Shown here: one piece after another, positions 3,987 to 27,043 of the stretch
Layout: every line of letters starts with the position of its first letter
Position numbering within the stretch: the first letter of the stretch is position 1
Assembly: GCA_946965045.2 (NCBI GenBank)
Contig: OX337237.1
Location: 930,001 to 994,000, forward strand
Direction: 5' to 3'
Length of the DNA: 64,000 bases
Source: Epithemia pelagica
Lineage: Eukaryota; Protista; Bacillariophyta
Position numbers and translations under genes: made by a program
The notes under the pieces: model-generated
Told to the model about the DNA's origin: nothing
What the model saw: only the letters and a program-made list of their open reading frames with translations
The model's database searches: none

Positions 3987-4366
3987 AATGTTCGACAGTA
4001 GCTACTTTCACTGCTCCTGGAGACTGAACCACAGGTCGAAATGCGCGACACCCCTATGATTTTCTACTACTTTTATATCTATCCTATCGATTAGGTTGGG
4101 TGGTGTTTCGCATTTCGACCGGCGAATGGCCATCGTCGCATGAAGCGGTCACTAGTCGTTATTGCATTTTGCATTTTTCAATATGTGCGTGACAAAATGT
4201 GAGGAACACGAAAACCGTAAGTGATCCGAAACGCTGGGGTACTGTGGGCTAAAGTGTAGTATACAATTTCCCACTATGAAAAACTCATGCACTCCGCAAC
4301 GTGAACCAGCTTGTAGTCGCATTTATACCTTTCCCCTTCTGCTTTTCTGTGCACTCGACCTCGACC

Positions 4367-5674
4367 ATGGTGTCGTTTGTCACTGGAACGCCGTCGGGCG
4401 GAATGTCTTCCAGCCCTGCTGCTACTGCCGCTATATTGGATTCGATGCACAATGATTACATTTTCCAAATAGTCTTTGATTCGTACGGCCGTCGCATGGC
4501 TACTTGTTCGGCCGATCGGTTGGTTCAAGTCTGGGAGTTGCAAGATTCGGGCGAATGGAGTTTGGTGGCCCAATGGCAAGCCCATCGAGGAGCGGTAACA
4601 GGCTTGGCCTTTTGTCATCCAGAATTTGGACATGTTCTGGCCACGTGTGGGAGTGATCATCATGTCATGGTGTGGGAAGAAAAAACAAATCTGACCACAT
4701 CCTCCACCCACCCAACAACAACGCCCTCCTGCAAGGTGGTACCCACCACTCCCCTGACAGCGACAACGACGACAACGACTGCCACCAAAAGCAACGGCAA
4801 CACTGCCACGAATTTTCCGTCGCGGTGGATGAATCGAGCGTCCTTGACAGATGCTCGTCGTGCCACGACCTGTTTGGAATTTGCCCCCAATCATTTTGGA
4901 TTGCGCTTGGCGGTCGGATCGGCCGATGGATGTGTTCGTATTTACGAAGCGGTGGATACCATGAATTTGGCGCAATGGTCGTTGGAGGCCACCTTGCCTC
5001 TTGTTTCCACCAGTACTACTACGACGACGACTCTTTCCAATGCAAACAACAACAACAATAACAACACCCCGGGCCATGCTACAACAACAACAGCTCCTCA
5101 CGTGTCGTCCTTGTCCTGGTGTACGGGACGATTCGAACCGTTGACCTTGGTGGTGGGTGGTAGCCAATTGCGAATTTTTCGATACATGGAAGGGACCACA
5201 CATGCGTGGCAATCCATTCTCCAATTGGACACGACTACCTGTTCTACAATGGCCACCTCCATTCCCTCCATTGTCAAGGTGGCCTGGGCTCCCAATGTGG
5301 GACGACGCTATCATTACGTTGCGGCGACCAATACCAAGGAAGAATTGATGGTGTTCAAATTGACGCGGGGAGATTTACTGCCCAACAAAAACAAGAAGAA
5401 CAAGAACACTACAACGCCAAAGGAGAATACTACGTCCACACCATCCGCACCCTTGACCTTGGAATGGATGCAAGGATTGGAGGATCCTTCCAGCAAACAC
5501 CACAACAAGGCATGGAATTGTCAATGGAATGTCACGGGGACGGTCTTGGCTTCGTCGGGAGAAGATGGAGTCGTTCAATTGTGGAAATTGCAAGATACGA
5601 CACGCGACCAATTTGTCCCCGTGGCCAAGGTGCCGGAACCATCCAGCACGACCACAGCCATGGAAACGAGCTAA
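4367..5674 (+). CDS. SEH1: WD40 nucleoporin Seh1
   Basis: DYIFQIVFDSYGRRMATCSAD, AHRGAVTGLAFCHPEFGHVLATCGSD, FAPNHFGLRLAVGSADG, WAPNVGRRYHYVA and WNVTGTVLASSGEDG match Seh1. First ATG at 4367; the ORF track starts at a GTG at 4301. Confidence 0.9.
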   Translation: MVSFVTGTPSGGMSSSPAATAAILDSMHNDYIFQIVFDSYGRRMATCSADRLVQVWELQDSGEWSLVAQWQAHRGAVTGLAFCHPEFGHVLATCGSDHHVMVWEEKTNLTTSSTHPTTTPSCKVVPTTPLTATTTTTTATKSNGNTATNFPSRWMNRASLTDARRATTCLEFAPNHFGLRLAVGSADGCVRIYEAVDTMNLAQWSLEATLPLVSTSTTTTTTLSNANNNNNNNTPGHATTTTAPHVSSLSWCTGRFEPLTLVVGGSQLRIFRYMEGTTHAWQSILQLDTTTCSTMATSIPSIVKVAWAPNVGRRYHYVAATNTKEELMVFKLTRGDLLPNKNKKNKNTTTPKENTTSTPSAPLTLEWMQGLEDPSSKHHNKAWNCQWNVTGTVLASSGEDGVVQLWKLQDTTRDQFVPVAKVPEPSSTTTAMETS

Positions 5675-14127: not shown

Positions 14128-16551
14128 TCATGGTCCTTTCAAGGTCGCCCTACGACTTTGCGCTTCCAAAGCTTGAATCATGTCTTCAATCTCATCGTAT
14201 TCCGCTGTCATTTGTTCAATTTGCGCTGGCGTCAACGACAAGGGTTGTCGTCCTCCGCGAGCTGGTGCTTTCTTCTTTTGACATGAAGCCTGTGTCTCGT
14301 CTTTCACTTCAGAGTTCATGGCCCTTTCCACTCGTTCTCGCTGTTCTTCAGACAAGGTCATTTGGAAGTAATGTTCCAACATGGCAATCACATCCGCAGC
14401 GGCCATGTATCCCAAAAACAGTTTCTTATCAATACGACCAGGACGAATCAAGGCCGGATCCAAATGCTCGACATGATTGGTTGTCATGATAAGGATCCTG
14501 CCGGGAGAATCCACAACGCCATCCAACACGTTCAGCAACCCACTCAAATTCAATTGGTCTCGTTCGGGCTTCCACAACGAAGCCATGGACCCGGATACAC
14601 CAGTACCTAGTGTAGAAGAACTGGTTGCCATCTTTGCGGCTGCTGAGTACGTAGTGATGCTTTTGCCAGTTTGAGGTGTCGCTGAATTGGGACCGGGAGA
14701 ACTTGACCGTGTTGATGTGGTCGTGGTTGGTGTACTGGAACCATGTCGGTGTCCAACTTGTTTTTCCATGAGTGCCCTGGCAAACACATCATCTCTCATG
14801 TTTGCAACCAAAGCAGATAAGTCTATCGAACCATTGAAATGTTCTTCGTTGGAATCATGGAGATTGGATGTACGTGAAGTGTTCTTGCGATTCAGCGCCG
14901 AAATATCATCAAAGGAGGTCTCCCCCAGCAGAGCATTCACAAATTCATCATCAAGTTCTGCTCCTTGCTCAATGTGATTCATGAGAAGCCTAGCCTGAGA
15001 TCCGAGAAAACGGTCGACGGTTTCAGTATCTTCTGTGATTTGCGTCACGGCAGCCAAGGTCTTTGCGCTGATTCGTTCCATCGATGAAGTTTCATGGTCA
15101 CTCGCGTTGTCACCGATGGTCGGTTCTCCGACCAAACCCAATCCTGGTAAGGCTCGTAATTTCTCTACCGCCTGTGTAAGCACATGGGACTCCGCAAACT
15201 TCTGTTTCAGACGGTCTGATTTCTCAATCAAGAGTTGAATGAGATCCTTACACTCTGAGTCATTGCTTTCCAAAAACATTTGCCAGGGCGATTTGGGTTT
15301 GGGAAGCTCATCCATAGAAAGAACCATGTCGCTGGCATCGTGCTCATCGACATGACAAGTCTTGCCATCTCGACGTCGTACCGCGTTGGATGCAGCATCC
15401 ACGTCTTCCATGACAAAAATGACATCTTTAAAGTCCAGCTTTTGTGGCATGGATTCTCCCTCGACGTACTTCTTTGGATCGTTGAAAATGGTCATGAGTT
15501 CGGCATTGGTTTGGACACGTGCCAAGGGTACATTGATAATGGATCGGCCTGTATGTTGGGCCAAAGCCTTGATAAAACTAGTCTTTCCAGAACCGGGACA
15601 TCCACTCAAGAGTAGACCCAGCTTGTGCGGATAGCCCGGAATTTGATACTTGCCCGTTCGTTTCGTAAAATGCTGAATCAGTTTCAACAAGGACTCTTTT
15701 TGCCGAAAAAAGAGGGAAGCAAAGGTTTTTTCTTCCGACAATCGGTATCGTGTGTAGAGACGGCCGGATGGTCCTTCGTCATCATCTTGCTTGTCGTTTC
15801 TACTACTTCTCGATGACTTGAGTTCGTAAAAGTAGCGCGAATTGTCACAGGATTTCCGCAGCTGCTCCAAATAGTTCCGATAAGCCTTGTCAATGAAATC
15901 TTCAATTGCAAAACTAGAATCTGATTGCAGAACATATGTTCGGACCCACTTACTTTCGTCGGTTTTTCTCATTTCAACCTGTTCCATAAAAATCCATACC
16001 TTTGCCTTTTCCTCGCCACAAATACCCTCTGTTGTACCGTAGTTACCAATATCATGCCATTCTCCTTTGGGAGGTTTGAGAAGGACGTGATATTTGGATA
16101 AGACGCCGGCCAGCGTGGTATGTTGCTCATCTTCGCCATTATTGCTGCTTTGCTGCCCAACATCAGCGTTCTTGTCTTCAGTGGAAGTGAGATCGACATC
16201 TGCTTCAATTAAATCCATTTTGACATGGGAGTTGAGATACATGTCGATCGCTTTCATGAGGATACTGTTCTGTGTATCTTCGTCGTCGTTGCGGTAATCA
16301 CCCCACTTTCCACGTCGGCTTTTGTGGACAATTCGACGTTCTTGTGTACGAACTTGGCGCCTCATACGAAACAGTCTTTCAATGCAGCGAAATGCCTCTT
16401 GACATCCCTTCAGTAGCACTTTTAGAATCAGAGGGAAGAGCAACGCCACAAGCATATCAATATGGGGATTGCCGGTGCGAAGAGCATTCAGAATCCCCAT
16501 GGATTGAATCCCATCCATGTCAAAGAGATCATTTTCATCACCCTCAGACAT
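14128..16551 (-). CDS. BCS1-like AAA+ ATPase, copy 1
   Basis: Walker [10 protein letters not shown], Walker [26 protein letters not shown] and [12 protein letters not shown]-terminal hydrophobic anchor. Confidence 0.85.
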
Positions 16552-17371
16552 GACAGGTTCAGATAGCCCACAGGTTTTGAATTATGAGCTCTGGGATCGT
16601 AATTCACATTGCTGCACGTTTCGTCTGAGACAAACACATCCGGTCCACGACCCACGAGCTCTCGTTCGCGACTAAAAACTGAAATTGTCAGAACTCATGC
16701 GACTGGAAATGTGAGGGGGCGAAGGAATGAATTTGTGGGGGTTGAATTCGGGAGCGCGCAAAATGCTTCCGGATCGTGAACGGTGAATAGAAGAAAGAGA
16801 TCTACAAGGACATACTTCGACGAGCTCTGGGAGTGACTAACGGTGAATCCATCGCAACAATTCTGTTCCTTCCAGCTCCCTCGGGGTCAAGGTTTGAATG
16901 CTTCACAGTCCCAAGACTTGCCGAACTACCTTGGCATTGGGCAAAAGCCTGCGACGCACAGGACGAAGCTTCATTTCAGGACTGAACTCCATCCGGTTTA
17001 CCTGGCCGTTATCAAAGCATCCCTTTCGGTCATATTCTTTCAAATGTTCAAGATTCCGAAGCAAAGTAGTTTCCCACATTGACATGTCTTTCGTCCGGGA
17101 AACAGCATCAGCGATATCCTCCAAACTGAATGTATCAACACGTTTCAACATTCCATTATCAGTTCTTCCTAGATACACAGTGGTACATCCCGATCCGACC
17201 ATCTGGAAAAAGAAATTGGTATTCTGTTTCTTTTTCGTGTTCTTGAATTCTACAGGATTTCCGTCCATATCTGTTCCATCGGCTTCTCCCGACATCAATG
17301 TTCGAAACGGTCCAACTTGCGTTAGTTGAACATGTTCTGAAAAGCCAATGTCATGAAGATCTTCTAGTCTT

Positions 17372-17664
17372 TGTTGGAAATAATGAGACAAACGGAAAAA
17401 TGATTCACGAGTGCTCGGCATCGCCCGGAGTGAAGCATCAAACAATGACGGGAAGTACATATAGAAACAGTCACGAACACACGCGCGAGCCAGAACGGAA
17501 ACGCGTAACGTTCGCTGACGTAGTGAGATTTGGAAAAGCAAAGACGAGCAAGGCGAAGAAATCCTGTGCTCATTCTTTGGAGATAATCAAGGCAGTAAAG
17601 TAAAACGACGTTTGATTTACAACGATAGTGCTTAAGCTGACGGCTCTGCACCCATCGTACAACA
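17372..17664 (+). repeat. 5' LTR (293 bp)
   Basis: TGTTGGAAAT...CGTACAACA. By eye it differs from the 3' LTR at one position (A17621 vs G22376). Confidence 0.95.
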
Positions 17665-17678
17665 TTATCTCCAAAGAA
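17664..17678 (+). promoter_or_regulatory. Primer-binding-site position, complementary to the element's own LTR (candidate self-priming site)
   Basis: ATTATCTCCAAAGAA is the exact reverse complement of TTCTTTGGAGATAAT at 17573-17587. There is no TGG-starting tRNA-type PBS here. Confidence 0.7.
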
Positions 17679-17711
17679 AAAGATTTGCTTTCTACCCAGT
17701 GTCAAAGTCCA

Positions 17712-18395
17712 ATGCCAAACGCGCGAGATATCGGTCAAGAACGTGGAAATCAAGAATACAACGAGTTGGTACAAGAGCTCATCAATTTGTCCATCCGACA
17801 ACACGAAATTGCGCAACGACTGCGAGATCTCCGACCGGCCAATCCCCAACGGCCACCAGTGGCCGTCTCTGTGGCCCAACAAGTACAAGCTGGTTACGAG
17901 ACGGGAGACAGCGAAGAAGAGTTGACCCCAAGAAGCAACGAGACCTCTCACGTGGGTGCCAGTATCGCAAGTTCGTCTGTTGAGGTTGTGGGCGTTATCC
18001 GTCGAGTTGAGAGAGAGAGACAACAAGACCCATCCGAGTACACGCCTGCCGAACTCACTGCACTCCAAAGTGGATGCACGTTGTGGACGTCCGCGACAAC
18101 AGGGAAACGGTACATCATTCATCCCAGTCGACGCTCTTTTGCCATCGGGGATATCGTCAAGACTTCCAACCCTGCCAATCCGGGAAACGACCTGGCGCCC
18201 TCTCGACGAGACGGAACAGGCGTGATTACCAAGGTGCAGACTGTCCAAGTGTCGCTTCGTACTGACAGTGGACAAGAGATAAGGCGAAGCAAGAACAACG
18301 TTCGGTATCTCTCGGCCGAACGAGATGAGCAGTACGCCCAATTCGAGCCCGTCGAACCAGGCCGGCGCCCCAACTACGCCAAGTACCGCGCCTAA
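17712..18395 (+). CDS. Accessory ORF upstream of gag (coiled-coil plus KOW/SH3-like C-terminal domain)
   Basis: Intact ORF inside the element. Contains YNELVQELINLSIRQHEIAQRLRDL (heptad-like) and FAIGDIVKTSN...GTGVITKVQTVQVSLRTDSGQEIRRSKNNV (beta-rich). Its stop is 1 nt before the gag ATG. Confidence 0.65.
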   Translation: MPNARDIGQERGNQEYNELVQELINLSIRQHEIAQRLRDLRPANPQRPPVAVSVAQQVQAGYETGDSEEELTPRSNETSHVGASIASSSVEVVGVIRRVERERQQDPSEYTPAELTALQSGCTLWTSATTGKRYIIHPSRRSFAIGDIVKTSNPANPGNDLAPSRRDGTGVITKVQTVQVSLRTDSGQEIRRSKNNVRYLSAERDEQYAQFEPVEPGRRPNYAKYRA

Positions 18396-18396
18396 C

Positions 18397-19974
18397 ATGG
18401 AAGGAAACCAGTCCAACGGTGGACGTGGAAGGCGTGGAGGTCGTGGCAGAGGCCGTGGTGGTCGTGGTGGTAGAGGAGGACGAGGTGGTCTACACAACAG
18501 TGGGACAACATTCAAGGGTAACACAGAAGGTATGAACGGTCATATCTTCCAAGAGTTCTACGAGTGCAATGATAAGCGCCAGTTCGCACGAACGCTGGAG
18601 GCGCTGGAAGAATACATCGCCAAGAATTACAAGCATGCGGGTGACATGATGCCTTTGACGAGGGAATTGAAGAATCCGGAAATTGCTGAACCAGCCGACC
18701 TTCCAGAAGGAGAGACGAGTCGCGTGAAGACAATCCTCCTCGAGAAACAGATCGCCGCCTATGTTACACGATGTGACATATTGGAAAGCAACCTCCAGGC
18801 CACATATGCAGTGATATGGGGGCAATGCAGTGAAGCAATGCGCGCCAAATTACAAGGATTAGAAAAATACAACGACGCCCGAGACAAATGTGACTGTGCT
18901 TGGCTCCTAACACAGATCAAGGCAATACGATACAAGTTCGAAGAGAAAAGATATGGGTACGCGTCTCTGAATGACGCTTATAACAATTTTTATTCACACC
19001 GCCAACAGAATGAAGAAGCCCTGGCGGATTATCTGCACCAGTTCAAGGAGAACGTCGATGTTCTGGAACATTATGGTGGTGCCGTGGGAGTCGACAAAGG
19101 TTCTCAAGAGCTCATTGAGAAGTATCTAGAGCCTGGAGAGACCGTGTCCTCCGAAACCAAGAAGAAGATGAGTCGTGATCGCGCTCTGGCGATCCAATTT
19201 CTCAAGGGTGCCGACCGCAAACGTTATGGAAATCTGCTGATTGAGTTAGAAAACCAGTTTTCCAGAGGAACTGACCAGTATCCTCCTGATTTGACGGCGG
19301 CATACGGCATGCTCGTCAGCTACCGAGGCGCTAAACAGTCCGCACCACCATCCTCTCCCTCGCCCTCGCCCAGTCCAGGCTTACAGTTTGCTCAGACTGC
19401 TGATCCCGTGCCCGGTCTTGATGGCGTTCTTCATGAAGGCATTACTTGTTTTCACTGCCGTGGGCCCGGACATTATGCAAGTCAGTGTCCCCACCGACAA
19501 GATGGGACTGAGGGTAATGCCGGAGTCACCATGCTCCACCATCACCAACCCTCCTCATACAATTTCACCTTCGCTCACGTTGATTGTTGCCTCTCCCAGT
19601 CACGTGTCGCCATCCCATCCACCTGGGTGCTTCTCGATAGTCAATCAACTATCTCGGTCTTTCACAATGCCTCCCTGCTCCGTAACATTCGGCCATCCTC
19701 CCATCCGTTGACGGTTTACACTAATGGTGGTAAACAAGTTTCTCGTTTGGTAGGTGACATTCCCAACTTTGGAGAAGTGTGGTACAACCCACAGTCTTTG
19801 GCCAACATCCTTTCTTTGGCCGCTGTTCGGCAACAATGTCGCGTCACAATGGATACCTCTGGTGATCCATCCATTGCGGTCCACCGCCGGGATGGAACGG
19901 TAATGCTTTTCAAAGAGAGTCCCATGGGTCTATATTATTTCGATGTCAGTGACCACTCTAACTTTACTAGGTAG
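18397..19974 (+). CDS. Copia gag (RGG box, CCHC zinc knuckle) plus aspartic protease
   Basis: RGG-rich N-terminus, YAVIWGQCSEAMRAKL, CFHCRGPGHYASQC, and protease WVLLDSQSTISVF...WYNPQSLANILSL. Confidence 0.9.
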   Translation: MEGNQSNGGRGRRGGRGRGRGGRGGRGGRGGLHNSGTTFKGNTEGMNGHIFQEFYECNDKRQFARTLEALEEYIAKNYKHAGDMMPLTRELKNPEIAEPADLPEGETSRVKTILLEKQIAAYVTRCDILESNLQATYAVIWGQCSEAMRAKLQGLEKYNDARDKCDCAWLLTQIKAIRYKFEEKRYGYASLNDAYNNFYSHRQQNEEALADYLHQFKENVDVLEHYGGAVGVDKGSQELIEKYLEPGETVSSETKKKMSRDRALAIQFLKGADRKRYGNLLIELENQFSRGTDQYPPDLTAAYGMLVSYRGAKQSAPPSSPSPSPSPGLQFAQTADPVPGLDGVLHEGITCFHCRGPGHYASQCPHRQDGTEGNAGVTMLHHHQPSSYNFTFAHVDCCLSQSRVAIPSTWVLLDSQSTISVFHNASLLRNIRPSSHPLTVYTNGGKQVSRLVGDIPNFGEVWYNPQSLANILSLAAVRQQCRVTMDTSGDPSIAVHRRDGTVMLFKESPMGLYYFDVSDHSNFTR

Positions 19975-21709
19975 TTCTCCCTCTGCTCCTTACCTTTTTC
20001 TCAATAACGCGACCGGATATTCCCCTCGGGAGGTCGAAGGAGCGGATCGCGCGCGGATTCTATACCGACAACTCGGTCGACCCTCCCAACGCGATTTCCT
20101 GGACGCTCTCGCACACAACGTGATTCAAAACTGTCCCGTCACCGCCGAAGACGCACGCCGCGCCCTCAAAATTTATGGGCCCGATCCCGCAACCCTCAAA
20201 GGCAAGACCGTCAAGCGACCAACACCAGCAGTCCCACAACTCATCCCAACGGACATCCCTACCAAAATTAAACAAGAGCACCAGCGCGTGACGATATGCG
20301 CCGACAACTTCTATGTACAAGGTCACATTTTTTGTCATACGATCAGCCGTCACCTACATTTCCGCACAGTCGCCGCCATCGAGAACCGACGCAAGGCGAC
20401 CCTCGAAAAAGAAATCAAGGACGTAATCCACATGTACCAAGCGCGTGGCTTCGAAGTGACCGACCTGCATGCCGACAACGAGTTCGCACCAATCCAACAG
20501 AACATCCTGCCCGTCCTGTCAAATATTGTGGCGGCCGATGACCACGTCGGCCAAGTCGAACGTTCTATACGAACAATTAAGGAGCGAGTCCGTGCTACCG
20601 TCCATGGCTTACCGTACCGCCGATATCCTACACTAATGGTAAGGGAAGTGGTGGCCCACGCTGTCAGGACGCTCAACCAACTACCGAGCAAGAAAGGTGT
20701 TTCTGCAACAATGAGTCCGAGAAAAATCGTGACTGGTCTTCCCGACCCCGACTACAACAGCATGAAAATTGAATTTGGGCACTATGCCCAGATCTTCGAG
20801 GAACGACGACGAACGAATACGACGGCCCCAAGAACAATCGGAGCCATAGCACTCAATCCCACGGGTAACGCCCAAGGGAGCTATTTCTTTTTGTCACTCG
20901 CCACAGGAGCGCGGGTATCGAGACAGCAATGGACGGAGCTTCCCATCACACAAGCAGTTATTGACCGTGTCGAAGAATTGGCCGAACAACAAGAACAGCC
21001 CCTCATAGATGGAGAACTGGTTTTCGAGTGGGCCCCCGATATACCAATCCACGACGACGCTGACGGCGAGGACGGAAATAACGAGGAGCCTGGACCTGAA
21101 ATAGACGAAGAGTCCAGCCAAGACGAGATACCTGCATCGGACGAAGAAGAAGAAGAGCCACCCGTCGTGTCAACAACAGACGAAGACGACACCGTCGACC
21201 CAGTCATCGATGACGAGCCGGAGATGGAAGTCGAGGAACCATCGGAAAATGAAGGAGCGACGGAAGATGAAGGAGCGACTGATGAAGGAATGGATGAATA
21301 TACCGCGGGATATGACGACGAAGTCGTGGACGTCGACCATGAGGAAATGGACCCAGAAATGGCGGATGAAGATTTGGACGCTCCACAGCATACATACAAC
21401 CTCCGAGGTAATCGCGAACGGTCCTACGAACACCGACTCGATCATCAAATGGACACTGCTGATGGCAGTATGTCCTACATGCATATGCAATTCCTCCAGC
21501 GAGCAATCCGCCATGCGACAACCAACGTGAATGAAAGAAGGCCTATACATTCAATCGTGCCTGAATTCATGTTCACCCAGATGTCGGCGCAAGCAGGTAT
21601 CAAGAAGCACGGACAGCGGGCAATAGACGCACTGCTCAAAGAATTCACCCAATTGGATGGACAAGATACATTCGATCCACAGGACGCCTCAAAGCTCAAT
21701 CATCGCTAA
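19943..21709 (+). CDS. Copia integrase, acidic linker and first residues of RT (truncated)
   Basis: GADRARILYRQLGRPS, TICADNFYV, LHADNEF, HVGQVERSIRTIKER, RTIGAIALNPTGNAQGSYFFLSL. Ends FTQMSAQAGIKKHG...KEFTQL then stop. Confidence 0.88.
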   Translation: MSVTTLTLLGSSPSAPYLFLNNATGYSPREVEGADRARILYRQLGRPSQRDFLDALAHNVIQNCPVTAEDARRALKIYGPDPATLKGKTVKRPTPAVPQLIPTDIPTKIKQEHQRVTICADNFYVQGHIFCHTISRHLHFRTVAAIENRRKATLEKEIKDVIHMYQARGFEVTDLHADNEFAPIQQNILPVLSNIVAADDHVGQVERSIRTIKERVRATVHGLPYRRYPTLMVREVVAHAVRTLNQLPSKKGVSATMSPRKIVTGLPDPDYNSMKIEFGHYAQIFEERRRTNTTAPRTIGAIALNPTGNAQGSYFFLSLATGARVSRQQWTELPITQAVIDRVEELAEQQEQPLIDGELVFEWAPDIPIHDDADGEDGNNEEPGPEIDEESSQDEIPASDEEEEEPPVVSTTDEDDTVDPVIDDEPEMEVEEPSENEGATEDEGATDEGMDEYTAGYDDEVVDVDHEEMDPEMADEDLDAPQHTYNLRGNRERSYEHRLDHQMDTADGSMSYMHMQFLQRAIRHATTNVNERRPIHSIVPEFMFTQMSAQAGIKKHGQRAIDALLKEFTQLDGQDTFDPQDASKLNHR

Positions 21710-22358
21710 ATTGAGGAAACAAAAGCTCAATACGAAAAGCTCTACAGAAGCTGAAGTAGTCGGAGCAAGCGACTACCTCCCAAATTCAATATGGGCAAGG
21801 AGATTCCTCGAAGCACAAGGATATAGAATCCCAGGCACAAAATTTGCCCAAGACAACCAAAGTGCTATCAGATTGGAGAAAAACGGAAGAGCATCCGCAG
21901 GCAAGCAATCACGACATGTGGACATTCGATATTTCTTCATAAAAGACAGGGTCAAACAAGAGAACATCAAAATCCACTATTGCCCAACGGAAGAAATGCT
22001 AGCGGATTTTTACACAAAACCATTACAAGGGGGTCTCTTCAACAAATTTCGAGACGTCCTTCTTGGACACAAACCACTCAGTTCCCTCCAGAACCCCACG
22101 TGCGATTCCTCCACTCGCGAGGAGCGTGTTGGAAATAATGAGACAAACGGAAAAATGATTCACGAGTGCTCGGCATCGCCCGGAGTGAAGCATCAAACAA
22201 TGACGGGAAGTACATATAGAAACAGTCACGAACACACGCGCGAGCCAGAACGGAAACGCGTAACGTTCGCTGACGTAGTGAGATTTGGAAAAGCAAAGAC
22301 GAGCAAGGCGAAGAAATCCTGTGCTCATTCTTTGGAGATAATCAAGGCAGTAAAGTAA
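21657..22358 (+). CDS. Copia RNase H C-terminal fragment, reading through the 3' LTR
   Basis: KQKLNTKSSTEAEVVG, QDNQSAIRLEKNG, RHVDIRYFFIKD, MLADFYTKPLQG. The N-terminal catalytic segment is missing. Confidence 0.85.
   Translation: MDKIHSIHRTPQSSIIAKLRKQKLNTKSSTEAEVVGASDYLPNSIWARRFLEAQGYRIPGTKFAQDNQSAIRLEKNGRASAGKQSRHVDIRYFFIKDRVKQENIKIHYCPTEEMLADFYTKPLQGGLFNKFRDVLLGHKPLSSLQNPTCDSSTREERVGNNETNGKMIHECSASPGVKHQTMTGSTYRNSHEHTREPERKRVTFADVVRFGKAKTSKAKKSCAHSLEIIKAVK
22117..22126 (+). promoter_or_regulatory. Short polypurine tract candidate
   Basis: GCGAGGAGCG immediately precedes the 3' LTR. Confidence 0.5.
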
Positions 22359-22419
22359 AACGACGTTTGATTTACGACGATAGTGCTTAAGCTGACGGCT
22401 CTGCACCCATCGTACAACA
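22127..22419 (+). repeat. 3' LTR (293 bp)
   Basis: Direct repeat of 17372-17664. Confidence 0.95.
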
Positions 22420-23278
22420 GTCTTTTCCCGGTCATGAGGCGTTCAAACTGAAATCCTGGAAGTGAATAATCTTGTCGATAAATATGTTCATATCGGACCA
22501 TGATTATAGAAGTCCTTGGTACCTTCAAGACAAAAATTGGAAAGTTGGAGAACCTACCACCATTTGTCCATTTTTCAGTAGCAAGGAATTGGAGAGGTTT
22601 AGAACCACTAAGGCAAAAATCCAACGTATCGAGATCACATTTCGACTTTGCATGCAAAAGCGTCCCAATTCCAGTGTTTCCACACGGGTACGTGTTAGCC
22701 ACAAATTGTTCCGGGAGATTCGTTCGAAATTTGATGGGAAACTGCAGGTTATTGATATCAATGACCGTATCCGGTGGCTGATCGGAGGCGAAAAGTTGGT
22801 GAATTTCGTTGGCTGTTGCCTTTCCAATGTTCTTGTAGTACAACGGATATCCACCCAATCCCCAGTCAGGATGACCCCACCGGAAATATCCCAGATCACA
22901 AATCAAGTGCACGTTCGATAGACCGGGAATCTTTCTCATAGAAGTAACAACTTCGGTGCAGTTCGTGATCTTTCTACTCCTACACTTCTGAAGCTAAAGA
23001 GTCGGTATATTCGGTATCTTTTTCTCGAACAATTAGGGGGGGGGGTTCTCTGGGGAGCGAGAAAGACGAACAGCGACAGGGAGAGCCCTTCCCAATTCCC
23101 AAGTCCCGAATGCAGTTCTGGTTACAGAGCCTTGAAATTGGCAGAACCATAAAGCGACTGAAGAACAATGGAAATGCTGTCTAGATACACTGATTACGGA
23201 TAATGTTACAACCCAATGGCAAATTCATGTTATAAAGCAACCGCCGGTCAATGATTCAATTCATTGGGAGACACCATT

Positions 23279-24478: not shown

Positions 24479-27043
24479 TCATCTCGTATTCTTCTTGCGA
24501 CTTTGCGCTTCCAAAGCTTGAATCATGTCTTCAATCTCATCGTATTCCGCTGTCATTTGTTCAATTTGCGCTGGTGTCAACGACAAGGGTTGTCGTTGTC
24601 GTCCTACGCGAGCCTGCGGTTTCGTTGGTTGTTGCTCCGCATCCACCACTCCCTTCATGGCCTTTTCGACTCGTTCTCGCTGTTCTCCTGACAAGGTCAT
24701 TTGGAAATAATGTTCCAACATGGCAATCACATCAATCGCCGCCATGTATCCCAAAAATAGTTTCTTATCAATACGACCAGGACGAACCAAGGCCGGATCC
24801 AAATGTTCGACATGATTGGTTGTCATGATAAGGATCCTGCCGGGAGAATCCACAACGCCATCCAACACGTTCAGCAACCCACTCAAATTCAATTGGTCAC
24901 GTTCGGGTTTCAGCCAAGACGACGGTGAGGAGGACAAGGATGCCGGTAAACCCCCCACAAGAACCGAACTGTTTGTGGCTCCTGATTGGGAGGCTGGACT
25001 TTGAGATCCTGACGATGTCGTTGAGGTAGGCACTGTTGGGGGAGTGCTAGATCCTCCATTGGCTTGATTTTTCAAGAGTGCTTCCGCCAATAGACCATTC
25101 GTACCCATGTGGCCCGTCAAGGCCGACATGTCCAGGGATCCACGGGGAATTGTGCGGTCCATTTCATGTTCCGACACTCGTTCCAGCTGCATGGTGGTCG
25201 CAGCAGCATGTTCCAAGGAATTGGTTCCCAACATGGCATTGACAAAGCTGTCATCCACTGGAACTCCTTGTTCGATGCGAGTCTTGAGGAGTCGTGCCTG
25301 TGCTCCCAGAAAGCGATCCAAGGTGGACGTGTCATTCATGACTTTTTGGACGGTACACAACGCGTCGGAACCAATCTTTTCCACCGCCTCACGATTGTTA
25401 TCACCGGAAGGGTGGCTGTCACTGGTCGATGGTCCTCCTCCCACCAATCCCAAACCAGGCAAGGCTCGCAATCGCTGCACGGTACCCGTCAAGATTTGCG
25501 TGTCAGCTGCTGTTTGTTTCAAACGGTCCGACTTTTCAATCAGCAGTTTGACAAGCTCTTTGCAGTCCGAGTCGTTGCTTTCCAAAAACAAGTGCCATAC
25601 CGATTTGGGTCGAGGCATGGAGTCCTGACGACCAGTCGCAGTTTCGTCGTCGTTGTCGTCATGATTGGGATTGCTCGTGGGTTCGTCCCACTCATTGCCT
25701 ACAGGAATTTTGCCATCGCGGCGTTTGACAATGTGCGAGGCGGCATCGACATCTTCCATGACAAAGATAACATCCTTGAAATCCAACTTTTGCGGCATGG
25801 ATTGTCCTTCAATCTGCTTTTTGGGATGATTGAAAATGGCCATGAGTTCGGCATTGGTTTGGACACGGGCCAAGGGGACATTGACAATGGACCGACCGGT
25901 ATGTTGTGCCAAGGCCTTGATAAAACTTGTCTTGCCCGATCCCGGACATCCACTCAAGAGAAGGCCCAATTTGTGCGGATATCCTGGAATTTGATACTTG
26001 CCCGTGCGTTTGGTAAAGTGTTCAATCAATTTCAAGAGAGATTGTTTTTGTTGAAAAAAGAGAGACGCAAAGGTTTTTTCCTCGGACAATCGGTATCGTG
26101 TGTACACACGGTTGGAACTGGCCGAGTCACTGTCCTTTTTGTTACTACTGGATGATTTGAGTTCGTAAAAGTATCGGGAATGATCTTCGAGTTTGCGCAG
26201 TTCCGTCAAATAACTTTGATAGGCCTTGTCCAAAAAGGCATCAATGGCGGCTCCACTGGTGGACTGTAAAAAGTACGTCTTGACTTGTTGTTGACTTGCT
26301 GTCATATCACTGTCCGGTGTCTCATTGCCATCCTTGGTCACACCATAATATTCCATGCGGAGTCGAACCGATGCCGTTTCGTTTGCTTTGTCATTGTCCT
26401 TGTTTGGTTTGGTCCGGACAAGCCCATTCTGGCCCGGTGAGCTCTGTGTCTGGCTCGTGGTTGTTGATGTAGCATACTGGCCCAAATCGTGCCATTCATT
26501 AAAAGGTGGTTTCTGAACCAGTTGATACTTGGCCAAGGCTCCCACCAAGCTATTGTCCTGGTTGTCGTCATTGTCATCATCTTCATTGTCCGAATCGTAC
26601 CAATAATAATAATCGTCATTGTTTCCCTGACCAATGGTGGCATTTTGATCTTCGGTCGAGGTGAGATCAACGGTTGCTCGCGTCAAGGGCAATGAGACAT
26701 GTTGATGGAGATACAAGTCAATGGCCTTGATGAGAATGCTATTTTGCGTATCCTCGCTGTCATTTTCCATATCGCCCCAGGCATCACGATAGGTCTTGTA
26801 CACGATGCGCCGTTCATAATACGCGTCGTCGTCACTGTCCTTGTTCCAAATGTGCGACCATGCCTGGTGCAACCAGTGGCCCACGGTGGGAAGAGACGAA
26901 AGGACGAACTTGATGAGCAAGGGAAGAAGCAACGCCAAAACCATGTCGATTTGTGGATTTCCAGTGCGGAATCGTGCCATGGAGGACAAGGGGTTCATGT
27001 CATTCATTGTACCATGAGTGTGGTGGTTCTCGTCGTTCGACAT
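24479..27043 (-). CDS. BCS1-like AAA+ ATPase, copy 2
   Basis: Paralogue of 14128-16551 with the same Walker A/B and DPALVRPGRID motifs. First ATG at 27043; the ORF track starts at 27124. Confidence 0.85.
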   Translation of the reverse strand: MSNDENHHTHGTMNDMNPLSSMARFRTGNPQIDMVLALLLPLLIKFVLSSLPTVGHWLHQAWSHIWNKDSDDDAYYERRIVYKTYRDAWGDMENDSEDTQNSILIKAIDLYLHQHVSLPLTRATVDLTSTEDQNATIGQGNNDDYYYWYDSDNEDDDNDDNQDNSLVGALAKYQLVQKPPFNEWHDLGQYATSTTTSQTQSSPGQNGLVRTKPNKDNDKANETASVRLRMEYYGVTKDGNETPDSDMTASQQQVKTYFLQSTSGAAIDAFLDKAYQSYLTELRKLEDHSRYFYELKSSSSNKKDSDSASSNRVYTRYRLSEEKTFASLFFQQKQSLLKLIEHFTKRTGKYQIPGYPHKLGLLLSGCPGSGKTSFIKALAQHTGRSIVNVPLARVQTNAELMAIFNHPKKQIEGQSMPQKLDFKDVIFVMEDVDAASHIVKRRDGKIPVGNEWDEPTSNPNHDDNDDETATGRQDSMPRPKSVWHLFLESNDSDCKELVKLLIEKSDRLKQTAADTQILTGTVQRLRALPGLGLVGGGPSTSDSHPSGDNNREAVEKIGSDALCTVQKVMNDTSTLDRFLGAQARLLKTRIEQGVPVDDSFVNAMLGTNSLEHAAATTMQLERVSEHEMDRTIPRGSLDMSALTGHMGTNGLLAEALLKNQANGGSSTPPTVPTSTTSSGSQSPASQSGATNSSVLVGGLPASLSSSPSSWLKPERDQLNLSGLLNVLDGVVDSPGRILIMTTNHVEHLDPALVRPGRIDKKLFLGYMAAIDVIAMLEHYFQMTLSGEQRERVEKAMKGVVDAEQQPTKPQARVGRQRQPLSLTPAQIEQMTAEYDEIEDMIQALEAQSRKKNTR

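Follow-up and report, generated by a model that had tools for sequence, protein, structure and literature searches.

Results

Structure and coding content of the element

The window, by which we mean the whole stretch of 64,000 nt that was analysed, contains an LTR retrotransposon whose features are collected in Table 1. The two LTRs are identical at 292 of 293 positions, with one mismatch and with TG..CA ends, and the insertion is bounded by a 5-bp target-site duplication (TSD). Between the LTRs lie a primer-binding site (PBS), a first open reading frame, a gag-pol region that is broken into three frames, and a polypurine-tract-like stretch, and GGAG(C/T)G is found directly 5' of the 3' LTR in all families of related elements.

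Table 1. Features of the retrotransposon, with the counterpart of its first open reading frame in a sister copy. Positions are those of the window except in the row for L031.
Feature	Position	Strand	Remarks
Left copy of TSD, GTCTT	17367..17371	+	identical 5 bp at 22420-22424
5' LTR, 293 nt, TGTTG...CAACA	17372..17664	+	direct repeat with 22127-22419
Initiator-like TCATTCT	17570..17576	+	predicted transcript start A17572 or T17573
Predicted self-primer (left arm of duplex), TTCTTTGGAGATAAT	17573..17587	+	complements 17664-17678 exactly; covaries with PBS
Remaining R-U5, 76 nt	17588..17663	+	two hairpins within the closing stem, from the predicted fold
PBS (right arm of duplex), ATTATCTCCAAAGAA	17664..17678	+	begins on the last LTR base
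ORF1, 5' of gag-pol	17712..18395	+	without Pfam family
ORF1 counterpart in L031	857-1603
Broken gag-pol, three frames	18325..22358	+	18325-19974 (zf-CCHC), 19943-21709, 21657-22358
Polypurine-tract-like GCGAGGAGCG	22117..22126	+	adjoins the 3' LTR; read directly
3' LTR	22127..22419	+	primer segment repeated at 22328-22342
Right copy of TSD, GTCTT	22420..22424	+	matches 17367-17371

Comparison of the open reading frames of the window with Pfam returned zf-CCHC only. A non-copia nature of the element was ruled out as the reason for this poor result, which is accounted for by a deletion of the reverse transcriptase (RT): the window copy has no RVT_2 because it has lost about 1.09 kb. RVT_2 is matched at residues 1193-1435 (E = 2.8e-20) in L031, a sister copy of a related family on contig 5. 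L031 encodes an ORF1 of 248 aa followed by a 1769-aa ORF, which contains a zinc knuckle at residue 398, a DSQ protease-like motif, and an RNase H-like tail after RVT_2, with only about 330 residues following the RT. Upstream of the RT and after the zinc knuckle, residues D683, D740 and E776 (D..D-35-E) are invariant in an alignment of 20 proteins. The region from the zinc knuckle to the RT gave no match to Pfam rve, even at E <= 10, and searches of PDB sequences returned only a marginal match to RSV integrase (E = 0.97) with a single protein and an irrelevant low-complexity match with a profile. In a language-model Atlas, the stretch at the integrase position lies near clusters with rve, SH3_retrovirus and gag_pre-integrs, which we take as a lead only. 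Together, the DD35E invariants and the Atlas leads are the grounds on which we assign this stretch to an integrase. The initial annotation had classified the element as Ty1/copia, and this classification is upheld by the TSD, the TG..CA LTRs, RVT_2 in L031, and the integrase motifs before the RT. On these sequence characters, and in particular on RVT_2, the placement of the integrase before the RT, and the 5-bp TSD, we identify the element as a Ty1/copia LTR retrotransposon.

Among the best 120 of 2287 protein homologues (E <= 1e-20), identity ranged from 53 to 100%, and every homologue in that set with a named organism came from Nitzschia inconspicua, Fragilaria crotonensis or Chaetoceros tenuissimus. 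The nearest named relatives are copia polyproteins of these three diatoms. Judged by its diatom host and the clustering of its homologues, the element is a CoDi-like diatom copia. Such elements are numerous in the genome, with 958 first-look candidates.

Deletions and recent insertion of the window copy

Compared with a copy on contig 16 that is 96-97% identical to it, the window copy is missing approximately 70 bp at 21059/21062 and approximately 1.09 kb, RT included, at 21697/21698. A 4-nt indel is located near 19968, where 4 nt that are present in the window copy are missing in other copies. These indels split the reading frame of the window copy into its three pieces. The window copy is RT-deleted and non-autonomous, so that its own enzyme cannot prime, and it presumably moved in trans, by means of sister copies that would have to supply the RT.

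Three public DNA runs of this organism yielded contigs with an empty-site junction, in which 17365 is joined to 22419, at approximately the depth of the flanks, which indicates that at least one haplotype or strain does not carry the insertion. The insertion is therefore polymorphic or hemizygous, and the near-identity of its LTRs and the presence of the empty site show that it is young. In all families checked, the two LTRs of an element share 98.4-100% identity, and to judge from their sequences the elements that carry the duplex described below have been recently active.

A 15-bp duplex between the LTR and the PBS

The 15 nt that begin on the last base of the 5' LTR are an exact reverse complement of 15 nt within the same LTR (Table 1). 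Both this complementarity and the start of the right arm on the last LTR base had been proposed in the initial annotation, and direct reading gave the same positions, with the LTR ending at 17664. The TCATTCT that it described is likewise present, with the left arm directly after the TCA, and the polarity is as claimed, for the 3' end of the left arm is extendable into U5. The duplex itself cannot be lengthened at either end, where A17572 faces A17679 and C17588 faces C17663. No TGG follows the 5' LTR.

We considered whether the complementarity could be due to chance or a by-product of LTR composition, given that some arms in related elements look AT-rich and of low complexity (e.g. TTCTTTTTAAAATA). 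However, when up to one mismatch is permitted, the 64-kb window contains the 15-mer at three sites against 0.01 expected, namely in the 5' LTR, the PBS (on the minus strand), and the 3' LTR. None of 100 shuffles reached three occurrences. The arrangement also recurs with different sequences in 17 elements, and the covariation among them, which is described below, was reached in 0 of 500 shuffles. The window count and the covariation shuffles exclude chance as the explanation, and we regard its probability as negligible.

Folding of the RNA from 17572 to 17690 yielded a minimum free energy of -33.3 kcal/mol (z = -4.35), and in this structure the 15-bp stem is the closing helix that encloses two small hairpins. 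The stem likewise closes the minimum free energy fold in family D (z = -3.63).

Recurrence and covariation in related elements

Pairing between the LTR and the PBS was present in all 17 elements compared. This set comprises 11 elements from the same genome, one each from N. inconspicua, F. crotonensis and C. tenuissimus, and three from metagenome contigs. The elements from the same genome include close families with LTR identities of 97%, approximately 79% and approximately 72%, as well as distant ones, namely L039 at 68% RT-RH amino-acid identity and six elements at 44-48%, which contribute four distinct duplexes. C. tenuissimus (L057) and contig L080 contribute the signature only, with both LTRs not seen, and for L078 the contig holds just the 3' 141 nt of the 5' LTR. 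No LTR pair was found at L057 or at the metagenome locus L077, which is cut at the contig end, and L057 still carries the signature upstream of its ORFs.

In every element, the complement is perfect over 14-16 nt, and the LTR segment lies 71-144 nt upstream of the LTR end; a spacing of 91-93 nt between the arms is kept in families A-C. The left arms themselves vary between families and include, in addition to that of the window (TTCTTTGGAGATAAT), TTCTTTGGAAACAAT, TTCTATTGAGTTAA, TTCTTTTTAAAATA, TTCTAAGGAGATTA, TTCAATGGAGAATA, TTCTATCAACAATA, CTTTCTTGATTTAAT and TTCTCTCGAAGTAAT. With Chaetoceros excluded, there are 13 distinct duplexes with a total of 191 bp, and all 191 are Watson-Crick pairs, with zero G-U and zero mismatches. 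When arms of non-cognate families are set against one another, only 59% match.

Covariation was quantified in an alignment of the 17 R-U5-PBS segments (A1), in which 97.6% of cells are paired and the only unpaired cells are at the fifteenth position of the families with 14-nt duplexes. Compensatory two-sided changes were observed at 12 of the 15 pairs, which amounts to 58 double-change cells, and there were no one-sided changes. Sliding the partner by 1-3 columns reduced pairing to 42-54%. The expectation in the initial annotation that related elements would keep the complementarity through compensatory changes is thus met in many families and several diatom genera. The perfect pairing and its covariation in related elements point to strong selection on the pairing across diatoms.

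The boundaries of the duplex and the predicted transcript start

The right arm always adjoins the LTR end. In the families with 14-nt duplexes, CAACA is directly followed by the T that opens the arm, and in those with 15-16-nt duplexes there is an overlap of one base. The duplex of the families nearest the window takes in the last LTR base, whereas that of the 14-nt families starts one base later, which makes the exact priming nucleotide uncertain.

At the other boundary, an unpaired (C)TCA directly before the left arm is kept in 12 of the 13 distinct families, with A at position -1 in 12/13, C at -2 in 12/13, and T at -3 in 11/13. The initiator-like context that had been noticed in the window is therefore conserved across families. 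In Phytophthora infestans, TCATTCT is the commonest form of the INR (YCAYTYY), and its A was taken as the start by analogy with mammals (PMC3599244). The Inr-like motif proposed for Phaeodactylum tricornutum is TCAH(+1)W (PMC4686930), by which +1 would fall on the first paired base. By sequence comparison CTCA matches these stramenopile initiator motifs, which suggests that the complementarity starts at the expected transcript start; its other end is the end of U5. The left arm would then be the first ~15 nt of the transcript and the start of R. Conservation of CTCATTC could in part reflect coding constraint instead of initiator function, as the copy of the motif in the 3' LTR falls within the open pol frame.

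These boundaries bear on an alternative in which the duplex has a structural role and closes the 5' leader of the RNA, for instance for packaging, dimerisation, translation control or PBS presentation, while some other primer is used. Stems of this kind would be comparable to retroviral U5-IR or U5-leader stems. The stable fold closed by the stem is in keeping with such a role, as is the precedent of the fungal GalEa copia elements, which have a conserved hairpin of unknown role at the PBS position (PMC5445492), and covariation alone proves pairing and not priming. However, in 17/17 elements the right arm occupies the priming position directly at the LTR end, and there is no alternative PBS nearby (no TGG and no tRNA complement). 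The boundary of the left arm also falls exactly at the initiator-like motif. Furthermore, a structural stem would be expected to contain G-U pairs and occasional mismatches, whereas the arms described here are Watson-Crick paired throughout with no one-sided changes, which is the outcome expected if the primer is copied into the PBS as a template. We therefore regard a purely structural role as unlikely.

Comparison of the PBS with host tRNAs

Most Ty1/copia elements use tRNA-Met or half-tRNA primers, according to Neumann et al. (2019; PMC6317226), and a host tRNA, half-tRNA or other cellular RNA could likewise be the primer here, with the LTR complement being incidental or an annealing aid. 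We compared the PBS region with 14 nuclear tRNA genes of nine amino-acid types, an incomplete sample from among the 63 best tRNA matches that does not include tRNA-Met, and found complementarity of at most 6 nt, compared with 15 nt for the LTR. A Phe tRNA gene that is possibly organellar also gave at most 6 nt. Moreover, the 13-mer CTTTGGAGATAAT has 29 exact copies in the genome. One of these is in a non-tRNA context, the others belong to LTR-PBS-LTR triplets of families A and B, and 0 of the 29 coincide with a tRNA locus. Finally, 9 of 14 PBS positions vary between families and each PBS matches its own LTR, which indicates that a single tRNA would be unable to serve all of them. The claim that the PBS is not of the tRNA type is in agreement with these results, given the missing TGG and the failure of the sampled nuclear genes, tRNA-Met not among them, to match. 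We conclude that priming by a host RNA is very improbable.

Discussion

A model for self-priming

The explanation that we favor is that the element primes reverse transcription with its own RNA in the manner of Tf1, and we put the probability of this at approximately 0.8. According to this model, transcription would begin at the initiator-like TCA|TTC of the 5' LTR, at 17572 or 17573. The first ~15 nt of the transcript (17573-17587) would then fold back over the 76-nt R-U5 loop and pair with the PBS at 17664-17678. The RNase H of the element would cut past the paired stretch, which would leave a free 3' OH, and RT would extend this end through U5 and R to yield minus-strand strong-stop DNA, for which 17588-17663 would be the template. 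During plus-strand synthesis, the attached RNA primer would be copied, and its sequence would thereby be written into the PBS, much as tRNA sequences are written into the PBSs of retroviruses. Templated copying of this kind would explain how the arms remain perfectly Watson-Crick paired despite their fast divergence between families.

Relation to other self-priming elements

Self-priming is established for Tf1 and Tf2 of Schizosaccharomyces pombe, and the Tf1/sushi group of Ty3/gypsy elements is inferred to use it as well (PMC7175516, PMC6317226). The primer of Tf1 consists of the first 11 nt of its RNA, which anneal to the PBS and are released by an RNase H cut between nt 11 and 12 (PMC7175516). 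The diatom elements resemble Tf1 and Tf2 in that the PBS after the 5' LTR complements the start of the element's own transcript and not a tRNA (PMC7175516), with the transcript start and the RNase H cut being predicted in the case of the diatoms. A fold-back over R-U5 likewise sets the geometry for extension into U5 in Tf1. The duplexes differ in length, at 14-16 bp in the diatom elements versus 11 bp in Tf1, and the elements themselves differ in type. Whereas the Tf1/sushi elements are Ty3/gypsy chromoviruses with the order PR-RT-RH-IN, the diatom element has RVT_2 and an integrase before the RT. Because RT type and domain order differ, the element lies outside the Tf1/sushi clade, although its sequence suggests that it works like members of that clade.

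The initial annotation knew of no self-priming in a copia element and raised the possibility that the case was novel in this respect. This does not hold, since Neumann et al. (2019) predicted self-priming for the TAR lineage of plant Ty1/copia elements and cite an earlier proposal of self-priming for Houba and Osr-1 (PMC6317226). TAR elements, Houba and Osr-1 included, are also Ty1/copia without a tRNA-type PBS, and for them too self-priming was predicted from sequence. TAR is a lineage of land plants, whereas the elements described here come from diatoms. In published trees, CoDi-like elements fall in a different major copia branch, together with Pseudovirus and GalEa, from that of plant Tork/TAR (PMC2774666). 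Given these separate branches, self-priming in diatoms probably arose independently of TAR. An analysis of covariation across TAR families was not found in the accessible text of PMC6317226.

Among other copia elements, the CoDi-like elements of Maumus et al. (2009; PMC2806351) and Llorens et al. (2009; PMC2774666) are also diatom copia with an RT of the RVT_2 type. In the diatom copia literature that we searched (PMC2806351, PMC2774666, PMC8147415 and one 2025 preprint), neither a PBS nor priming is mentioned. Full-text literature searches, in which subscription papers are under-covered, returned no description of self-priming in diatom or CoDi elements. The fungal GalEa elements are also copia without a tRNA PBS and have a 'Conserved Hairpin Site' at the PBS position (PMC5445492). 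However, no LTR segment of GalEa is complementary to this site, and its authors excluded the Tf1 model (PMC5445492), in contrast to the perfect LTR complement in every diatom element. On the sequence evidence presented here, diatom copia elements are probably a third, independent lineage of self-priming LTR elements.

Implications

We further propose that tRNA-independent self-priming is general in a large and old radiation of diatom Ty1/copia elements that spans centric and pennate hosts, a proposal that we hold with only slightly more confidence than doubt. It includes the suppositions that the primer consists of the first 14-16 nt of the transcript and is set by a stramenopile-type initiator, that the system is independent of Tf1/sushi and TAR or was kept from a self-priming LTR ancestor, and that primer and PBS co-evolve by mutual copying in each cycle. 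If self-priming is general in diatom copia, the priming of each family would be private and free of the host tRNA pool, and a third, well-separated lineage would stand beside Tf1/sushi gypsy and plant TAR copia. The comparative support is unusually clean, with 13 different duplexes that are all perfectly paired. Templated copying offers a mechanism for the joint drift of primer and PBS, which would lead to family-specific pairs.

The arrangement also bears on whether LTR retrotransposons were first self-primed and adopted tRNA primers later, as discussed in PMC3601003, where Pseudoviridae are regarded as the oldest group. For annotators of diatom genomes, the complementarity provides a simple diagnostic, as LTR finders that demand a tRNA PBS miss or down-rank these abundant elements. 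The model also yields an exact prediction of where transcripts from the LTR promoters start and where the boundary of R lies, which is significant because diatom copia elements are stress-activated (PMC2806351).

Additional observations

Several further features were noted in the window and in related elements. The pol frame is open across the polypurine tract and the entire U3 of the 3' LTR in 8/8 families checked, and the pol stop lies inside the primer segment or at most 24 nt after it in all eight. This survey covered the window (22113-22358), L031 (6539-6770), L040, L042, L044, L048, L050, L052 and L054. In the window, the frame stays open through U3 and the stop is at 22356-22358. The promoter region of the LTR therefore also codes for the tail of the polyprotein, in which the conserved CTCATTC is translated as ..HS.. 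A CRE/bZIP-like TGACGT is present at 17516-17521 of the window, approximately 55 nt before the predicted start. Families A and B keep it (CGCTGACGT[A/G]GTG) and family D does not, and the stretch is translated as A-D-V-V in the pol tail. The ORF1 of approximately 230-250 aa, for which Pfam has no family, lies ahead of the gag-pol ORF and overlaps it in a different frame, both in the window and in L031.

Direct repeats that are 72-99% identical and 10.31-10.35 kb apart flank the copia element (14153-15909 versus 24498-26248 of the window). Either another repeat is present here in two copies, or a segmental duplication hosts or brackets the insertion. ARAGORN reported a 'tRNA-???' at 18302-18388 on the minus strand, within the coding region of the element, which we reject as a probable false positive on account of its two-base anticodon. 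A scan for bacterial promoters and terminators, a method unsuited to a eukaryote, gave nothing useful.

A genome-wide search with the primer core returned 247 matches, exact ones included, versus approximately 39 for a reversed control pattern. The variant CTCTGGAGATAAT, which differs from the core by one mismatch, makes up the majority of the one-mismatch matches listed, and its abundance suggests another large family with its own pair of primer and PBS. In the metagenome (JGI) contig L079 (1-9616), a 3.9-kb stretch recurs with a period of 5.67 kb and 99.98% identity, which suggests tandem copia elements that share LTRs. Lastly, L057 of C. tenuissimus contains a perfect inverted repeat of more than 20 nt at 4188-4503, with arms approximately 290 nt apart, in an ORF upstream of the RT.
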